From Scyliorhinus canicula (lineage: Eukaryota): a stretch of 64,000 bases of DNA. This document shows, one piece after another, positions 35,433 through 54,040 of the stretch. The stretch covers positions 8,583,209 through 8,647,208 of the forward strand of contig NC_052171.1 in the NCBI RefSeq assembly GCF_902713615.1, written 5' to 3'. The notes below the pieces were generated by a model. That model saw only the letters and a program-made list of their open reading frames with translations. It made no database searches and was not told where the DNA came from. The translations under genes and the position numbers were made by a program. Within the stretch, counting starts at the first letter, position 1. Each line of letters opens with the position of its first letter.

Positions 35433-35633
35433 CTATTTCATCAATGAATATGATACAGGGTTCAATTTTCGCAGCCAACGAGAAGACAGCGGCTGTAAGT
35501 TTCTGCGACTCTCCATACCACTTGTCCGTTAGTGTCGAGGCCTGCATGTTGATGAAGTGACAGCCCGCGACGCTCGCAGTGGCTTTGGCAATCAGGGTCT
35601 TCCCACAGCCTGGGGGGCCGTACAGTAACACAC
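35433..35633 (-). CDS. atad1: ATAD1 coding exon 4 (Walker A and Walker B)
   Basis: [13 protein letters not shown]...KWYGE...IIFIDEI; 201 nt; AG/GTAGG boundaries. Confidence 0.97.
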
Positions 35634-40250: not shown

Positions 40251-40283
40251 TTTTTAATAGCGGCGTGGACTTAACAAGCCTAC

Positions 40284-40418
40284 CTTTTTCTTGGCCTCGA
40301 TCTTCGGCCTCCTTGCCGGATCGATGATATCCACCATCCACTTGATGCCAAAGTACGTGGCAGCGCCAAACACCGTGAGGCGGAAGAGCGTCCCGAGCAC
40401 CTCACTCTGGCTCAGCAT
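40284..40418 (-). CDS. atad1: ATAD1/Msp1 coding exon 1 (N-terminal membrane anchor)
   Basis: MLSQSEVLGTLFRLTVFGAATYFGIKWMVDIIDPARRPKIEAKKK; AG acceptor at 40474-40475, GTAGG donor. An upstream out-of-frame ATG lies at 40456 (see findings). Confidence 0.9.
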
Positions 40419-41456: not shown

Positions 41457-41916
41457 CCGGCACTGCCAACAATGCGCACGTGAAGGGGACCGGCACTGCC
41501 AACAATGCGCACGCGAAGGGGACCGGCACTGCCAACAATGCGCACGTGAAGGGGACCGGCACTGCCAACAATGCGCACGCGAAGGGGACCGGCACTGCCA
41601 ACAATGCGCACGTGAAGGGGACCGGCACTGCCAACAATGCGCACGCGAAGGGGACCGGCACTGCCAACAATGCGCACGCGAAGGGGACCGGCACTGCCAA
41701 CAATGCGCACGTGAAGGGGACCGGCACTGCCAACAATGCGCACGTGAAGGGGACCGGCACTGCCCACAATGCGCACGCGAAGGGGACCGGCACTGCCAAC
41801 AATGCGCACGTGAAGGGGACCGGCACTGCCAACAATGCGCACGCGAAGGGGACCGGCACTGCCAACAATGCGCACGCGAAGGGGACCGGCACTGCCAACA
41901 ATGCGCACGCGAAGGG
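41457..41916. repeat. 33-bp CpG-rich VNTR, 14 copies
   Basis: Unit CCGGCACTGCCAACAATGCGCACGYGAAGGGGA. Confidence 0.97.
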
Positions 41917-42075
41917 TGCCAGAGGCCGGCGCTGCCCACGGCGCATGCGCTGGGAACGGAGCCGGCGCCTCCCATTCGCATGCGCCGACACCCCAAGAAG
42001 CGCCAACACGGAGAAGAGGCTTTCCCTTTAGTAAAGCGAAAAACCCCGACCCCGTTCGACGGCTGTGCCCCTCAC

Positions 42076-42200
42076 CCGCCTCCGGTCGCTGGGCCTGAGG
42101 CGAAACGCTCAGATGTTGGCCCGCGAGGTTCACGGACGCTCACAGCCGCCGCCATCTTCCCCCGCGCGACCGACAGTACGGTCCGGCTGGAAAACGGGGT
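42076..42200 (-). promoter_or_regulatory. Putative atad1 core promoter / non-coding first exon in a CpG island
   Basis: CpG-rich; YY1-type AAGATGGCGGC on the minus strand at ~42148-42158; GTGAG donors at 42071-42075 and 42139-42143; NRF1-like GCGCATGCGC at 41941-41950. Confidence 0.6.
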
Positions 42201-42469
42201 CCGGCCGATGGTTCCGCTCTGGCTCGAAAGGTCCTACCCTGCCACACATGCTTGCATTTCCTGCTCAAACAACTTCTGAAAATTGTATACCCGTGTGGCG
42301 TCTCTTGCATCCATTCATTTGCAAGTTCCACTGATTAAAGAGGATTTGAAAATAAATCTATTTATTACATTAAATGTCAGGCAACTGACACTATGCAGCA
42401 TTTTAGACAACGGTTGCAACTCATTCACATACCATGCATTCGAGCTGACATTGTGGCGACTTTTATACA

Positions 42470-42842
42470 GGGTGGCACTGCGGTCAGCACTGCTGCCTTG
42501 CAGCGCCAGGGACCCGGGTTCGATTCCGGCCTTGGGTGACTGTGTGGAGTTTGCACCTATTATAATAATCTTTATTAGTGTCACAAGTAAGCTTACATTA
42601 ACGCTGCAATGAAGTTACTGTGAAAATCCCCTCGTTGCCACATTCCGGCACCTGTTCGGGTACACAGAGGGAGAATTCAGAATGTCCAAATTACCTAACA
42701 GCACGTCTTTCGGGACTCATGGGAGGAAACCGGAGCGCTCGGAGGAATCCCATGCAGACACGGGGAGATTATGCAGGCTCCGCACAGACAGTGACCCAAG
42801 CCAGGAATCGAACCTGTGAAGCAACAGTGCTACCACTGTGCT
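42470..42842. mobile_element. Two SINEs tail-to-tail (plus 42470-42557, minus 42560-42842)
   Basis: Family similarity in opposite orientations. Confidence 0.8.
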
Positions 42843-43104
42843 TACATACCGCTGTTCGACACTTCACATTGTGTCATATTGCTTTCCAGCCACTTCAATA
42901 ATTTTTGAGGCACAGTCAGTTGTAATGTTGGAAACATGCCAACTTGTACACATCAATCTCCCACAAACAGCCGTGAGGTGGATGACCAGGGCATCTGTTT
43001 TTAGGAGCAGGAGTGGGCCATTTGTTTTCAAGCCTGCTCCGCCATTTGAGATGATCATGGTTGATCCTTTATCTCAACAGAATACTCTCCCCATATTCAA
43101 AAAA

Positions 43105-43920
43105 AGAACAAAATGAAGTTCAACACAGGAACAGACCCTTCGGCCCTCCAAGCCTGTGCCGATCATGATGCCCTAACTAAATTTAAAAAAACACTTGCCT
43201 TACTCAGTCCGTATCCCTCTATTTCCTCCCTATTCATGCCTCTTAAATGTTGCTAATATTGCCTGCTTCCACCACATCCTCTCCACTCTCTGCGTGGAAA
43301 ACCTACCCCTCATATCCTCCTTAAACTTTCCCCCTCTCACCTTAAATCTGTGCTCCCTTGTAATTGACACTTACACCCTTGGAAAAAGCCTGACTATCCC
43401 CCCTCTCTATGCCTCAGAAATATGTAGACCTCTATCAGGTCTCCCCTCAGCCTCCGTTTTCCAGTGAAAACAATCCTAGTTTATTCAACCTCTCCTCGTG
43501 GCCAACACCCTCGAGACCAGGCAACATCCTGGTGAACCTTCTTTGCCCTCTCTCCAAAGCTTCCACATCCTTCTGATATTGTGGTGACCAGAACTGCACG
43601 CAATACTCCAAAAGCAGCCTAACCAAGGTTTTATACAGCTGCAACATGATTTCCCAACTCCTGTACTCAATGCCCTGGCTGATGAAGGCAAGCATGCCAT
43701 TAGCCTACTTAGATCACCGTGGTCACCTGTGCTGCCACTTTTAGGGAACTGTGGTCCTGCACGCCCAGATCCCTCTGTATGTTAATGTTCCTAAAGGTTC
43801 TACCATTTACAGTATAATTTATACCTGGATTTGATCCTCCAACATGCATCACTTTGCATTAGTCCAGATTAAACTTCATCTGCCATTTCTGTGCCAAGAC
43901 TACAATCTATCTATATCCTA
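43105..43920 (-). mobile_element. CR1 3' fragment, abutting the Penelope element at 43921
   Basis: LYKTLVRLLLEYCVQFWSP motif. Confidence 0.85.
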
Positions 43921-44720
43921 GTAAGAAGTCTTACAACACCAGGTTAAAGTCCAACAGGTTTGTTTCAAACACGAGCTTTCGGAGCACAGCTCCTTCCTCA
44001 GGTGAATGGCGAGGTATGTTCCAGAAACATTTATATAGACAAAGTCAGAGATGCCCGGACAATGCTTGGAATGCGAGCATTTGCAGGTAATCAAATCATT
44101 ATAGATCCAGGGAGAGGGATAATCACAGGTTAAAGAGGTGTGAATTGTCTCAAGCCAGGACAGTTGGTAGGATTTTGCAAGTCCAGGCCAGATGGTGGGG
44201 GGTGGATGTAATGCGACATGAATCCAAGATCCCTGTTGAGGCCGCACTCATGCGTGCGGAACTTAGCTATAAGTTTTTGCTTGGCAATTCTGCGTTGTCG
44301 CGTGTCCTGAAGACCGCCTTGGAGATCGCTTACCCGGAGATCAGAGGCTGAATGCCCTTGACTGCTGAAGTGTTCCCCGACTGGAAGGGAACGTTCCTGC
44401 CTGGTGATTGTCGCACGATGCCCGTTCATTCGTTGTCGCAGTGTCTGCATGGTCTCGCCAATGTACCACGCTTCGGGACATCCTTTCCTGCAGCGTAAGA
44501 GGTAGACTACATTGTTCGAGTCGCATGAGTATGTGCCGCGTACCTGGTGGGTGGTGTTACCACGTGTAATGGTGGTATCCAAGTCAATGATCTGGCATGT
44601 CTTGCAGAGATTGCCCTGGCAGGGTTGTGTGGTGTAGTGGTCGCTGTTCTGAAGGCTGGGTAATTTGCTGCAAACAATGGTTTGTTTGAGGTTACGCGGT
44701 TGTTTGAAGGCCAGTAGTAG
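43921..44720 (-). mobile_element. Penelope-like retroelement 3' part: GIY-YIG endonuclease + terminal repeat
   Basis: Minus-strand ORF contains CxxC, NVVYLLRC...AWYIGETMQTLRQRMNGHR...EHF...GLNRD, typical of a PLE GIY-YIG domain. Confidence 0.9.
43970..44004 (-). ncRNA. Minimal type-I hammerhead ribozyme (second copy)
   Basis: Same motif on the minus strand, loop UGU. Confidence 0.75.
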
Positions 44721-44772
44721 CGACAACGCAGAATTGCTGAGCAAAAATTTGTCTATATAAATGTTTCTGGAA

Positions 44773-45570
44773 TGTGAGGTCTTGCACTTTGGAAAAAAGA
44801 ATCCAAGCATAGACTACTTTCTAAACGGTGAGAAAATTCATAATGCCAAAGTACAAAGGGATCTGGGAGTGCTAGTCGAGGATTCCCTAAAGGTAAACAT
44901 GCAGGTTGAATCTGTGATTAAGAAAGCAAATGCAATGTTGTCATTTATCTCAAGAGGGTTGGAATATAAAAGCAGCGATGTGCTACTGAGCCTTTATAAG
45001 GCTCTGGTTAGGCCCCATTTGGAGTACTGTGTCCAGTTTTGGGTCCCACATCTCAGGAAGGACATACTGGCACTGGAGCGTGTCCAGCGGAGATTCACAC
45101 GGATGATCCCTGGAATGGCGGGTCTAACATATGATGAACGGCTGAGGATCCTGGGATTGTATTCATTGGAGTTTAGAAGGTTAAGGGGAGATCTAATAGA
45201 AACTTACAAGATAATACATGGCTTAGAAAGGGTGGACGCAAAGAAAATGTTTCCGTTAGGCGAGGAGACGAGGACCCGTGGGCACAGCCTTAGAATTAGA
45301 GGGGGTAAATTCAGAACAGAAATGCGGAGACATTTCTTCAGCCAGAGAGTGGTGGGCCTGTGGAATTCATTGCCACGGAGTGCAGTGGAGGCCGGGACGC
45401 TAAATGGCTTCAAGGCAGAGATAGATAAATTCTTGATGTCGCGAGGAATTAAGGTCTACGGGGAGAATGCTGGTAGGTGGAGTTGAAATGCCCATCAGCC
45501 ATGATTGAATGGCGGAGTGGACTCGATGGGCCGAATGGCCTTACTTCCACTCCTATGTCTTATGGTCTTA
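44773..45570 (+). mobile_element. CR1-type LINE 3' fragment (RT C-terminus + 3' UTR)
   Basis: ORF with CEVLHFG...RDLGV...LYKALVRPHLEYCVQFW...RRLRGDLIETYKI...RTRGH; flanked by a TGGAA duplication. Confidence 0.93.
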
Positions 45571-45580
45571 TGGAACATAC

Positions 45581-45930
45581 GGGGCAACACGGTAGCATGG
45601 TGGTTAGCATAAATGCTTCACAGCTACAGGGTCCCAGGTTCGATTCCCGGCTGGGTCACTGTCTGTGCGGAGTCTGTACGTCCTCCCCGTGTGCGCGTGG
45701 GTTTCCTCCGGGTGCTCCGGTTTCCTCCCACAGTCCAAAGATGTGCGGGTTAGGTGGATTGGCCATGCTAAATTGCCCGTAGTGTCCTAAAAAGTAAGGT
45801 TAAGGGGGGGGTTATTGGGTTACGGGTATAGGGTGGATACGTGGGTTTGAGTAGGGTGATCATGGCTCGGCACAACATCGAGGGCCGAAGGGCCTGTTCT
45901 GTGCTGTACTGTTCTATGTTCTATGTTCTA
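45581..45930 (+). mobile_element. tRNA-derived SINE, full length, young subfamily
   Basis: A/B-box-like TGGTTAGC...GGTTCGATTCC; (TTCTATG)n tail. Confidence 0.9.
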
Positions 45931-46051
45931 TACCTCGCCATTCACCTGAGGAAGGAGCTGCGCTCCGAAAGCTCGTGTTTGAAACAAACCTGTTGGACTT
46001 TAACCTGGTGTTGTAAGACTTCTTACTGTGCCCACCCCAGTCCAACGCCGG
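45931..46051 (+). mobile_element. Inverted Penelope terminal repeat (distal part)
   Basis: 45931-46026 is the reverse complement of 43921-44016; continues from fragments at 44721-44772 and 45571-45580. Confidence 0.88.
45943..45977 (+). ncRNA. Minimal type-I hammerhead ribozyme in the PLE terminal repeat
   Basis: CAC-CUGAGGA-AGGAGC-UGC-GCUCC-GAAA-GC-UC-GUG: core CUGANGA/GAAA, stem II GGAGC/GCUCC, stem I CAC/GUG. Confidence 0.75.
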
Positions 46052-46259
46052 TGTCCCACCCCAGAGCAAACCCATGGGGAGAATGTGCAGACTCCGCACA
46101 GACAGTGACTCAAGACGGGAATCGAACCAGGCACACTGGCGCTGTGAGGCAGCAGTGTGACGCTGGGGATGCAGGAAGTTCTGGGCACCCCCCAATATTC
46201 CCAAAGTCAAGGGGAAAAGTTGCTCAAAACTTTGGTTGGAGGGGGAGGCTGGCTACCCC

Positions 46260-46610
46260 TGGGACGGTTGATTGACACGGAGCGCAGTGTCAGAGGGGGG
46301 AGCTGGAGCCAATAGGGAGCGAGGATGAGAAAGGAGGCGGGCTTGCGGTGGTAATGGACAGCAAAGTTAACCAATGGGAGGAGGGGTGGTGAGATCAACG
46401 TGGGCCCGGTAACAATTGACAGCACGATCGGCCAATGGGCGGGATGAGCATGGTGATTGACAGGACGATGGACCAATAGGAGGGGCACATGGCGGTGACA
46501 GGCTGCACGATGGACCAATAGGAGGGGGCTCAGAGCTGTGACGGGTAGCACGGCCACCCAATGGGAATGGGCGGACAATCGGGGGCGGGGGCGGGTCCCA
46601 GGCCGGCTCC
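46260..46610 (+). promoter_or_regulatory. wbp1-like promoter: six CCAAT boxes, TALE-type TGACAG motifs, GC box
   Basis: CCAAT at 46309, 46371, 46432, 46473, 46515 and 46558; GGGGCGGGGGCGGG at ~46582; CpG-rich. Confidence 0.75.
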
Positions 46611-46681
46611 ATGGCGGCGGAGGCTGGAGCGGAAATTTCAACTCGATCCAGATGAGAGCGTCGCCCCCGTTGCCCGGAGAC

Positions 46682-46765
46682 ATGGAGAAGATGGTCATCG
46701 GCTTCCTCCTCTTCATCTCCCCGGCTTTCCCCGTCGGGCCGTCGCGGATGGAGCTACACGCTGAG
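46682..46765 (+). CDS. wbp1-like: WBP1/WBP1L-family exon 1 (signal-peptide-like)
   Basis: GACATGG strong Kozak context; MEKMVIGFLLFISPAFPVGPSRMELHAE; GTAGG donor in phase 0, joining in frame to exon 2. An in-frame ATG also exists at 46652. Confidence 0.75.
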
Positions 46766-47416
46766 GTAGGGCCCGGGAAAGGTGGGGGTGCGGCCCGGCC
46801 GGCGCTCCAGGAAAGCCCGAGGCTTCCAGTTGCGAGCCTAGGCCGCGGCTGGGAAGGGCGGACCCGAGGGGCAACCTCGGCCTCCCTCGGGGTTTAAAGC
46901 CGTGCCTGTTTAATGGGGTCAGTACAGACTCGATGGGCTGAGTGGCCTCCTCCTGCACTGTAGGGATTGTCCCAGGGATGCAGCACTGACCTGCTGGCTC
47001 AGGGAGTTTATAACGTGGGGCCCTGACTGGACAGACCAGATACTGGGGGGCAGGAGCCAGGGCACTGCCTGCATTGCTGTAGCGCCTTTTAACGTATCAT
47101 CCTCAGGAGCTCCGGGCACGGGAAGGTCATTCGCCCAGGTTCACCGTCACCAGGTGGGTGATGCAGGGGGGAAAACAAAGCTGGTAGTGGTTAAGAAGCA
47201 TCGTACAGGGCCGCCAGCAACGTTGGGGGCGACGGGGGCCTCAGTATCGGGGAAACAAACGCGAGGCCAGAACTGAAGAGCCGCGAACAAAGTTCCCCAA
47301 GGTGGCAGGACAGGTTGGCGAGGCCGGAAAGACGGACTGAATGGGTGTCCGAGCTATTGCTGGTCAAGGTCCAGGACCCCACAGGGGGTGAGCACGTTCC
47401 TCTGGGTGGTCAAGTT

Positions 47417-47725
47417 TGGGTGGCATAGTAGCACAGTTGCTTCACAGCGCCAGGATCCCACGTTCGATTCCCGGCTTGGGTCACTGTCTGTGCGGAGTCT
47501 GCACGTTCTCCCCGTGTCTGGGTGGGTTTCCTCCGGGTGCTCCGGTTTCCTCCCACAGGTTAGGTGGATTGGCCATGATCAATTGCCTTAGTGTCCAAAA
47601 AGGTTGGGTGAGGTTACTGGATTACGGGGATAGGGCGGAGGCGCAGGATGCTCCTTCTAAGGGCCCGTGAGGACACTGCGGGCCAAATGGTCTCCTTCTG
47701 CACTGTAAATTCTGATATCTATGAA
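47417..47725 (+). mobile_element. SINE
   Basis: Family similarity. Confidence 0.82.
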
Positions 47726-49489: not shown

Positions 49490-49583
49490 GAGCACAGTAA
49501 GAAGACTTACAACACCAGGTTAAAGTCCAACAGGTTTGTTTCAAACACGAGCTTTCGGAGCACTGCTCCTTCCTTAGGTGAAA
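49490..49583 (-). mobile_element. Solo Penelope terminal-repeat fragment with mutated hammerhead core
   Basis: Matches 43921-44006; core reads CUAAGGA. Confidence 0.8.
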
Positions 49584-53937: not shown

Positions 53938-54040
53938 GCCAAAGAATTATGTTTTGGGGTGAACAATGAGCCATACTGGTGTGAGACAGGATACTGCTGC
54001 GGGGAGACAGAGTGTTGCACCTACTATTACGAACTGTGGT
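53938..54040 (+). CDS. wbp1-like: WBP1-family exon 2 (Cys-rich luminal domain)
   Basis: AKELCFGVNNEPYWCETGYCCGETECCTYYYELW; TTTTCAG/GTAAG boundaries. Confidence 0.95.

Follow-up and report, generated by a model that had tools for sequence, protein, structure and literature searches.

Head-to-head Penelope-like element insertion with a minimal hammerhead motif on each strand between ATAD1 and a WBP1-like gene in Scyliorhinus canicula

The spacer between ATAD1 and a WBP1-like gene of Scyliorhinus canicula contains two copies of a minimal type-I hammerhead ribozyme motif (min-HHR), one on each strand. Both lie within a 64,000-nucleotide (nt) stretch of contig NC_052171.1 (assembly GCF_902713615.1, positions 8,583,209 to 8,647,208), hereafter the window, from whose first letter all positions are counted. 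The motifs very probably belong to a single head-to-head insertion of an elasmobranch Penelope-like element (PLE), in which they would most likely be inert passengers. The anatomy of this insertion, its homology to other elements, and the conservation and covariation of the motif are directly observed. An initial annotation had placed the same motif at 43970-44004 (minus) and 45943-45977 (plus), positions that direct reading, a degenerate pattern and a structural descriptor all confirm. It had also proposed that the pair acts as a ribozyme-based insulator between two promoters, an idea that is disfavoured by the geometry of the locus, by the predicted energetics and by the known poor activity of this ribozyme class. 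The parts of the insertion and a third copy of the family are as follows:

43920..44718, minus strand: main PLE copy, 5'-truncated, 799 nt, comprising the end of the open reading frame (ORF) and the 3' terminal region with a hammerhead
44130..44718, minus strand: PLE ORF remnant from the ORF listing, linker and C-terminal GIY-YIG endonuclease part
43970..44004, minus strand: minimal type-I hammerhead motif, loop 2 UGU, predicted cleavage 43973|43972
44719..44772, plus strand: inner part of an inverted, internally deleted partial PLE copy, identified by inverted repeats
44773..45573, plus strand: later insertion, 3' part of a CR1-like long interspersed element (LINE), reverse-transcriptase C-terminal ORF and short-repeat tail
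45574..45580, plus strand: residue of the original PLE arm, seven bases (aacatac), read directly against the main copy (ttctggaacatacctcgcc)
45581..45929, plus strand: later insertion, tRNA-derived short interspersed element (SINE) with box B GGTTCGATTCC and a LINE-like tail (gttctat)n, from direct reading
45930..46027, plus strand: outer part of the inverted PLE copy (3' terminal region, terminus 46027), identified by the 98-nt inverted repeat
45943..45977, plus strand: minimal type-I hammerhead motif, loop 2 UGC, predicted cleavage 45974|45975
49496..49582, minus strand: third copy of the PLE family, solo, extremely 5'-truncated, 87 nt, in intron 1 of the WBP1-like gene

The limits of the main copy are set by two kinds of comparison. 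At its 5' end, blastn homology to Heptranchias and Logan copies begins at 44718, which corresponds to element position 55. Its 3' terminus at 43920 is common to all three copies in the window, and RNA reads from other PLE copies run off into unlike flanking sequence at the same position. Three inverted repeats tie the second copy to the first: 43920-44017 matches 45930-46027 over 98 nt (99% complementary), 44019-44043 matches 44748-44772 (25/25, 100%), and 44271-44301 matches 44720-44750 (28/31, 90%). The two copies are joined head to head at 44718/44719 with both 3' termini pointing outwards, and because the shark homology starts exactly where the inverted copy ends, they abut with no foreign DNA between them. 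The divergent, outward orientation of the motifs, already noted in the initial annotation, is that of the two arms of this insertion. Over 154 aligned bases, direct reading shows 4 differences between the arms, of which at least three are CG to TG or CA transitions; one CG transition accounts for the sole difference within the motif, where the loop is UGC or UGU. Identity between the third window copy and the arm is 96.6%.

The element is identified by its coding remnant. As translated, the minus-strand ORF at 44130-44747 contains CxxC followed by VVYLLxC ... YIGET ... GLN. Pfam gave no direct match on the endonuclease fragment; in the Atlas it lies closest to clusters of eukaryotic GIY-YIG proteins (score 0.97), and a database search recovered 75 homologues with E values down to 4e-89. 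These are uncharacterised proteins of Mustelus asterias, Heptranchias perlo, Chiloscyllium punctatum and Scyliorhinus torazame, and members of the set carry PF26215, PF01541 (GIY-YIG) and PF00078 (RVT_1, reverse transcriptase). A related element is present in a 3.7-kb metagenome-assembly contig of the ENA (L002:1-3715), whose ORF is near full length, interrupted into an RVT_1 ORF followed by an endonuclease (EN) ORF, and whose protein is 59% identical to the window fragment. These ORFs are flanked by direct repeats at a distance of 2958 nt, with the same hammerhead in each, so that the contig has, as judged from its ORFs and repeats, the canonical PLE layout of pseudo-long terminal repeat (pseudo-LTR), ORF and pseudo-LTR. 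Truncation has removed the reverse-transcriptase part from the window copy. The combination expected of EN+ PLEs, a Cys motif and GIY-YIG domain linked to a reverse transcriptase, is thus found through the fragment, its homologues and L002, and the pseudo-LTRs, 5' truncation and adjoining inverted 5'-truncated copy follow the description in PMC8557442. The earlier assignment of the motifs to Penelope terminal repeats agrees with the GIY-YIG remnant, the shark homologues and L002.

On both strands the 35-nt motif reads directly as CAC-CUGAGGA-A-GGAGC-(UGC on plus, UGU on minus)-GCUCC-GAAA-GC-UC-GUG, and the predicted scissile bond is C17|G1.1 in each case. This agrees with the cleavage sites first predicted near 43973 and 45974 and with the description of stem III as reduced to AGCU. 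A degenerate 27-nt pattern matched the two motifs without mismatch and 49551-49577 (minus) with one mismatch, and had 0 matches in 100 dinucleotide-preserving shuffles. A min-HHR descriptor modelled on the published definition was also applied; it asks for the core, with or without an additional base behind A9, for a helix II 4-8 base pairs (bp) long and for GAAA, and further demands a palindromic 15.2/16.2, U16.1-H17 and a helix I of at least 3 bp. The two motif sites are its sole matches in the 64 kb on both strands, with 0 matches in 100 shuffles, and both copies therefore retain the CUGANGA and GAAA boxes and stems I and II that had been described as intact. A chance origin of the motif is rejected by the shuffle controls of pattern and descriptor; since the two motifs sit in one 98-nt inverted repeat, this excess over chance applies to the repeat family and not to the pair. 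Rfam 15 reported no hammerhead in the whole window at the gathering score, nor in 43700-46300 at E<=10, and its only matches, RNAI and TP73-AS1, are both due to chance. This miss stems from the missing helix III; it is the models that fall short here, not the core. The hammerhead search proposed with the initial annotation therefore drew a blank with Rfam models and recovered both sites with the purpose-written descriptor. In the third copy (49496-49582, minus) the core is mutated from G5 to A (CUAAGGA). The 5' boundary of this copy lies 2 nt upstream of helix I, and a contig from run X15 departs from the main copy at 44003, near the same point; a 5' end close to helix I may perhaps be recurrent among short PLE copies.

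An extra unpaired base between A9 and G10.1 is a hallmark of metazoan PLE min-HHRs (PMC4209133). The A that follows CUGAGGA is this base and is present in 6 of 6 aligned sequences; it had not been broken out in the first breakdown of the motif, and it does not represent a defect. Both motifs contain the conserved boxes C3-U4-G5-A6-N7-G8-A9, G12-A13-A14-A15.1 and U16.1-H17 (CUGAGGA...GAAA-GC-U-C). The alignment (A1) consists of the three window copies, a Heptranchias copy (L001:12380-12465) and the two L002 repeats. In it, the closing pair of helix II, G10.1-C11.1 (columns 33/45), is G-C in all six sequences, and A15.1-G-C-U16.1 forms an invariant palindromic AGCU without helix III or loop 3. 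Also invariant are C3, U4, A6, G8, A9, the extra A, G10.1, GAAA and GCU, while G5 is altered solely in the decayed third copy; the variable positions are N7 (G or C), H17 (C or U) and loop 2. The Heptranchias motif, with U at H17 and C at N7, was missed by a strict pattern and recovered by blastn.

In helices I and II of this alignment, standard pairing holds in all 48 cells. Each helix has one pair in which both partners have changed, A-U to U-A in helix I and C-G to A-U in helix II, and wobble changes occur at two further pairs; when the partners are slid by 1-3 columns as a control, pairing falls to 20-62%. This covariation provides modest, consistent support for a maintained hammerhead. 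A covariance model built from the alignment found no copies besides its six source sequences. Judged by sequence, the motif shows every published feature of the minimal, helix-III-less hammerheads of metazoan PLEs. Downstream of the hammerhead, a second block (GTTGGACT.TAAC) is invariant in the window copies, Heptranchias and the distant L002, and the spacer preceding it is variable. It occupies alignment columns about 65-80 and is found at 43933-43951 (minus) and 45996-46014 (plus) of the window, L001:12447-12465, L002:78-95 and L002:3035-3052. This block is possibly a candidate recognition or initiation site of the PLE reverse transcriptase.

We infer that the insertion arose by double priming. 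Reverse transcription primed from both sides of a target break would have produced the minus-strand main copy and the short plus-strand inverted copy; every copy that keeps the 3' terminal 100 nt carries the hammerhead of the family, which leaves one motif per strand, and the later LINE fragment and SINE in the right arm pushed the motifs 1.9 kb apart. In vitro, a purified PLE protein cuts both strands of its target and extends them (PMC11167929), which provides a possible mechanism for such a twin insertion. The head-to-head form is a described PLE signature (PMC8557442), and dual min-HHRs on opposite strands, ~100-700 bp apart, were noted by Cervera and De la Pena (PMC4209133). The hammerhead itself is a conserved part of the element, and its presumed job is the processing of multimeric PLE transcripts, with two sense copies from direct pseudo-LTRs potentially forming a double hammerhead through the palindromic AGCU. 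At the present locus, the inverted geometry together with the truncated ORF would leave the motifs, most likely, as inert passengers.

Predicted folding is in keeping with this picture. Lacking helix III, a single copy of the motif is unable to form the three-way junction, and its predicted monomer fold pairs core bases with a stability not above that of shuffles (z about -0.8). The double hammerhead, which joins AGCU to AGCU and builds each helix I from both copies, has a nearest-neighbour energy of -23.1 kcal/mol, compared with -27.8 kcal/mol for two monomers and -35.1 for an alternative dimer; it is thus predicted to be less stable than two monomers with an unfolded core, and the intermolecular AGCU helix has a predicted probability of 0.0002. 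Such energies fit the low in vitro activity reported for PLE min-HHRs, which do not cleave as monomers and cleave only weakly as dimers (PMC4209133, PMC6765202). The statement in the initial annotation that such hammerheads usually cleave as dimers accords with these reports. The natural setting of the hammerhead is presumably the direct pseudo-LTRs seen in L002, where one transcript would supply both copies. A transcript crossing the shark locus in either direction contains one sense motif preceded by its perfect 98-nt complement, and the duplex of the 98-nt arms is predicted at -194.6 kcal/mol.

Several points weigh against a single insertion with inert motifs. The inverted copy has no equivalent of 44044-44270; this internal deletion of 227 nt calls for a further event, whether a template switch or a subsequent loss at a microhomology of 3 nt, and no target-site duplication was recognised by eye at 43919/46028. 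The covariation is based on about four independent lineages only. The nearest-neighbour energies, moreover, take no account of tertiary contacts within the hammerhead core.

The best surviving alternative, that two PLEs of the same family inserted independently, adjacently and in opposite orientation, is nonetheless improbable. The family is abundant: the 64 kb hold three copies, and other copies are the source of many RNA reads and contigs. Nested insertion, too, does occur here, as the LINE and SINE in the right arm illustrate. Two separate events would, however, have had to bring the 5' ends to within 0-1 nt of each other with no target DNA between them. The arms are moreover closer to each other, differing almost only by CpG transitions, than either is to the 96.6% identical third copy, and the head-to-head form matches the signature described in PMC8557442.

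The remaining alternatives concern the neighbouring genes and the transcription of the spacer, for which the relevant features are as follows:

35596-35619, minus strand: AAA Walker-A exon of ATAD1
40254..40418, minus strand: N-terminal coding exon of ATAD1, the left neighbour, transcribed leftwards (ORF translation)
46586..46766, plus strand: exon 1 of the WBP1-like gene, the right neighbour, transcribed rightwards (spliced RNA contig, one-strand reads)
near 54022 and 55692, plus strand: further WBP1-type exons of the WBP1-like gene

These minus-strand ATAD1 exons and plus-strand WBP1-like exons bear out the earlier description of a divergent gene pair. The exon 1 contig covers 46586-46766 and continues elsewhere, which shows it to be spliced. 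The ratio of observed to expected CpG is about 1.0 at 41500-42400 and 0.7-0.9 at 46300-46900. The left of the two CpG islands of the initial annotation consists largely of a 33-bp minisatellite. This repeat (41457-41916, 13.9 copies, 97% identity) accounts for the greater part of the CpG-rich block upstream of ATAD1 and is open in all six frames. At 46350-46527, shortly before WBP1-like exon 1, four CCAAT-box repeats (GACCAATAGGAGGGG) are spaced 41-61 bp apart and constitute a plausible NF-Y-type promoter array.

The RNA data comprise two oligo-dT runs of about 1.5 billion letters each. Raw reads on exon 1 fall on one strand only, which indicates that both raw-read libraries are strand-specific. 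In the unique spacer bins (42000-42393, 42985-43772 and 46137-46530), stranded depth is 0-0.8, compared with about 2 on exon 1 itself, which makes the comparison a weak test. Read depth on the PLE, LINE and SINE parts stems from other copies, as indicated by fixed differences and coverage of both strands, and half of the reads on these parts run on into unlike sequence. No pile-up of read ends was seen at the predicted cut sites, although oligo-dT libraries are poorly suited to unstable, non-polyadenylated RNAs. The stranded RNA check over the spacer that accompanied the initial annotation gave near-zero unique depth, where exon 1 itself reaches only about 2x; as far as this weak test goes, the reads give no support for read-through transcription of the spacer.

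There is a very slight chance that, if the spacer is transcribed, it is the long inverted repeat that matters instead, as an approximately 120-bp hairpin that would be edited or diced, or as a fold-back of the DNA. The predicted energy of the arm duplex (-194.6 kcal/mol) would allow for this, and at some genomic sites family members do yield transcripts from both strands. Against it, the oligo-dT reads, again a weak test, contain no locus-specific transcription, A-to-G changes in the reads are indistinguishable from differences between copies, and the arms now lie 1.9 kb apart.

The insulator reading, in which the hammerheads would cut promoter-upstream antisense transcripts before these reach the other gene, has next to no likelihood. 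Both cores are intact by sequence, and the orientations are those required: the minus-strand motif would be in sense for a transcript running leftward from the WBP1-like promoter, as would the plus-strand motif for one running rightward from the ATAD1 side. Each transcript would nevertheless contain a single sense copy, whereas the class needs two and cleaves poorly even then (PMC4209133, PMC6765202). The complement would precede the sense copy, and its duplex is predicted at -194.6 kcal/mol against -23.1 kcal/mol for the double hammerhead, with an AGCU helix probability of 0.0002. The arrangement is a standard by-product of PLE integration (PMC8557442) and not a designed-looking pair. The near-zero stranded depth of the unique spacer and the absence of read-end pile-up at the cut sites point the same way within the limits of a weak test, and in lizard PLE RNA-seq no reads end at the hammerhead site (PMC11167929). 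A co-option in trans, whereby unstable antisense transcripts from the two promoters would pair via AGCU with the abundant sense transcripts of other copies and be cleaved, has equally little in its favour; if true, it would reduce transcriptional interference between ATAD1 and the WBP1-like gene.

The head-to-head insertion has since been interrupted twice. The right arm reads ...ttctggaa [44773-45573] aacatac [45581-45929] (at)acctcgcc, where the main copy reads ...ttctggaacatacctcgcc. The LINE insert therefore interrupts an otherwise contiguous PLE arm, and the 1.9-kb spacing of the motifs is secondary, the LINE and SINE having been added to an original arm distance of about 0.85 kb. The assignment of 44773-45573 to CR1 was made by eye from the ORF listed at 44761-45486 and not by a database test; Pfam returned nothing meaningful on this ORF. 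All reads and contigs on the LINE part carry fixed differences from this copy, which identifies it as a member of a multi-copy family. The SINE shows the highest depth of the stretch in all runs. Its summed contig word depth is 335,000-551,000 (X1, X15), that of the LINE reaches thousands, and that of the unique flanks is in the tens or less, so both belong to very abundant families. The two LINE-type insertions, at 44772/44773 and 45580/45581, entered sites 7 bp apart in the same orientation.

The surroundings of the insertion are of similar character. The left flank contains another CR1-like reverse-transcriptase fragment (43709-43852, minus), the right flank contains an inverted SINE fragment (46073-46151, minus), and the intergenic spacer as a whole is a mosaic of transposon pieces. 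Further SINE-like segments of very high depth in RNA and contig runs lie at 42591-42787 and 47319-47712, and many of the apparent joints between these segments and 45695-45755 represent contigs from other copies and not splicing.

Among known systems, the closest are the metazoan PLE min-HHRs (Cervera & De la Pena 2014, PMC4209133; Lunse, Weinberg & Breaker, as relayed by PMC6765202). The shark motif has the same type-I topology, boxes and extra base, the same G10.1-C11.1 pair, the same lack of helix III and the same palindromic 15.1-16.1 (AGCU). It also occupies the same place, in a terminal repeat beside an ORF of reverse transcriptase and GIY-YIG endonuclease, and occurs likewise as solo copies and opposite-strand pairs. 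Nothing essential differs, cleavage being a prediction in the present case. The shark origin of the family may be added, as the passages of PMC4209133 consulted here name no shark genome, and stem II has 5 bp here compared with 6-8 bp in the schistosome and Drosophila virilis motifs given there. Rfam hammerhead families share the catalytic core with the motif, yet none of their models reports it even at E<=10.

The insertion in turn resembles the complex PLE insertions with pseudo-LTRs of Craig et al. 2021 (PMC8557442), in which an inverted 5'-truncated copy likewise lies directly at the 5' end, and its inverted terminal repeats fit a protein that cuts and extends both strands (PMC11167929). 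It differs from them in having no full-length or tandem copy and in that its inverted copy is internally deleted and was later split twice. Non-LTR retrozymes (PMC7229834; bioRxiv 10.64898/2026.07.22.740005) contain the same small type-I hammerhead derived from PLE pseudo-LTRs; however, they need direct (tandem) copies with two sense ribozymes per transcript. The copies in the window are inverted, so that no unit-length RNA could be excised or circularised, and a retrozyme or circular-RNA reading is rejected because the hammerheads lie on opposite strands. Pairing of two copies likewise compensates for an unstable or absent helix III in newt satellite 2 and avocado sunblotch viroid, whose double hammerheads (Forster et al. 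1988, cited by PMC4209133 and PMC6765202) arise, unlike the shark pair, from tandem multimers of one strand.

Both the motif and the inverted insertion belong to published PLE classes, of which this locus is an ordinary member, and it opens no new question. An insulator, if true, would be a natural ribozyme boundary between genes, and the anatomy argues against it. The locus represents a clean, fully dissected product of head-to-head Penelope integration with a hammerhead on each strand, and the cross-species alignment adds modest covariation support for the upkeep of the minimal hammerhead in elasmobranch PLEs.

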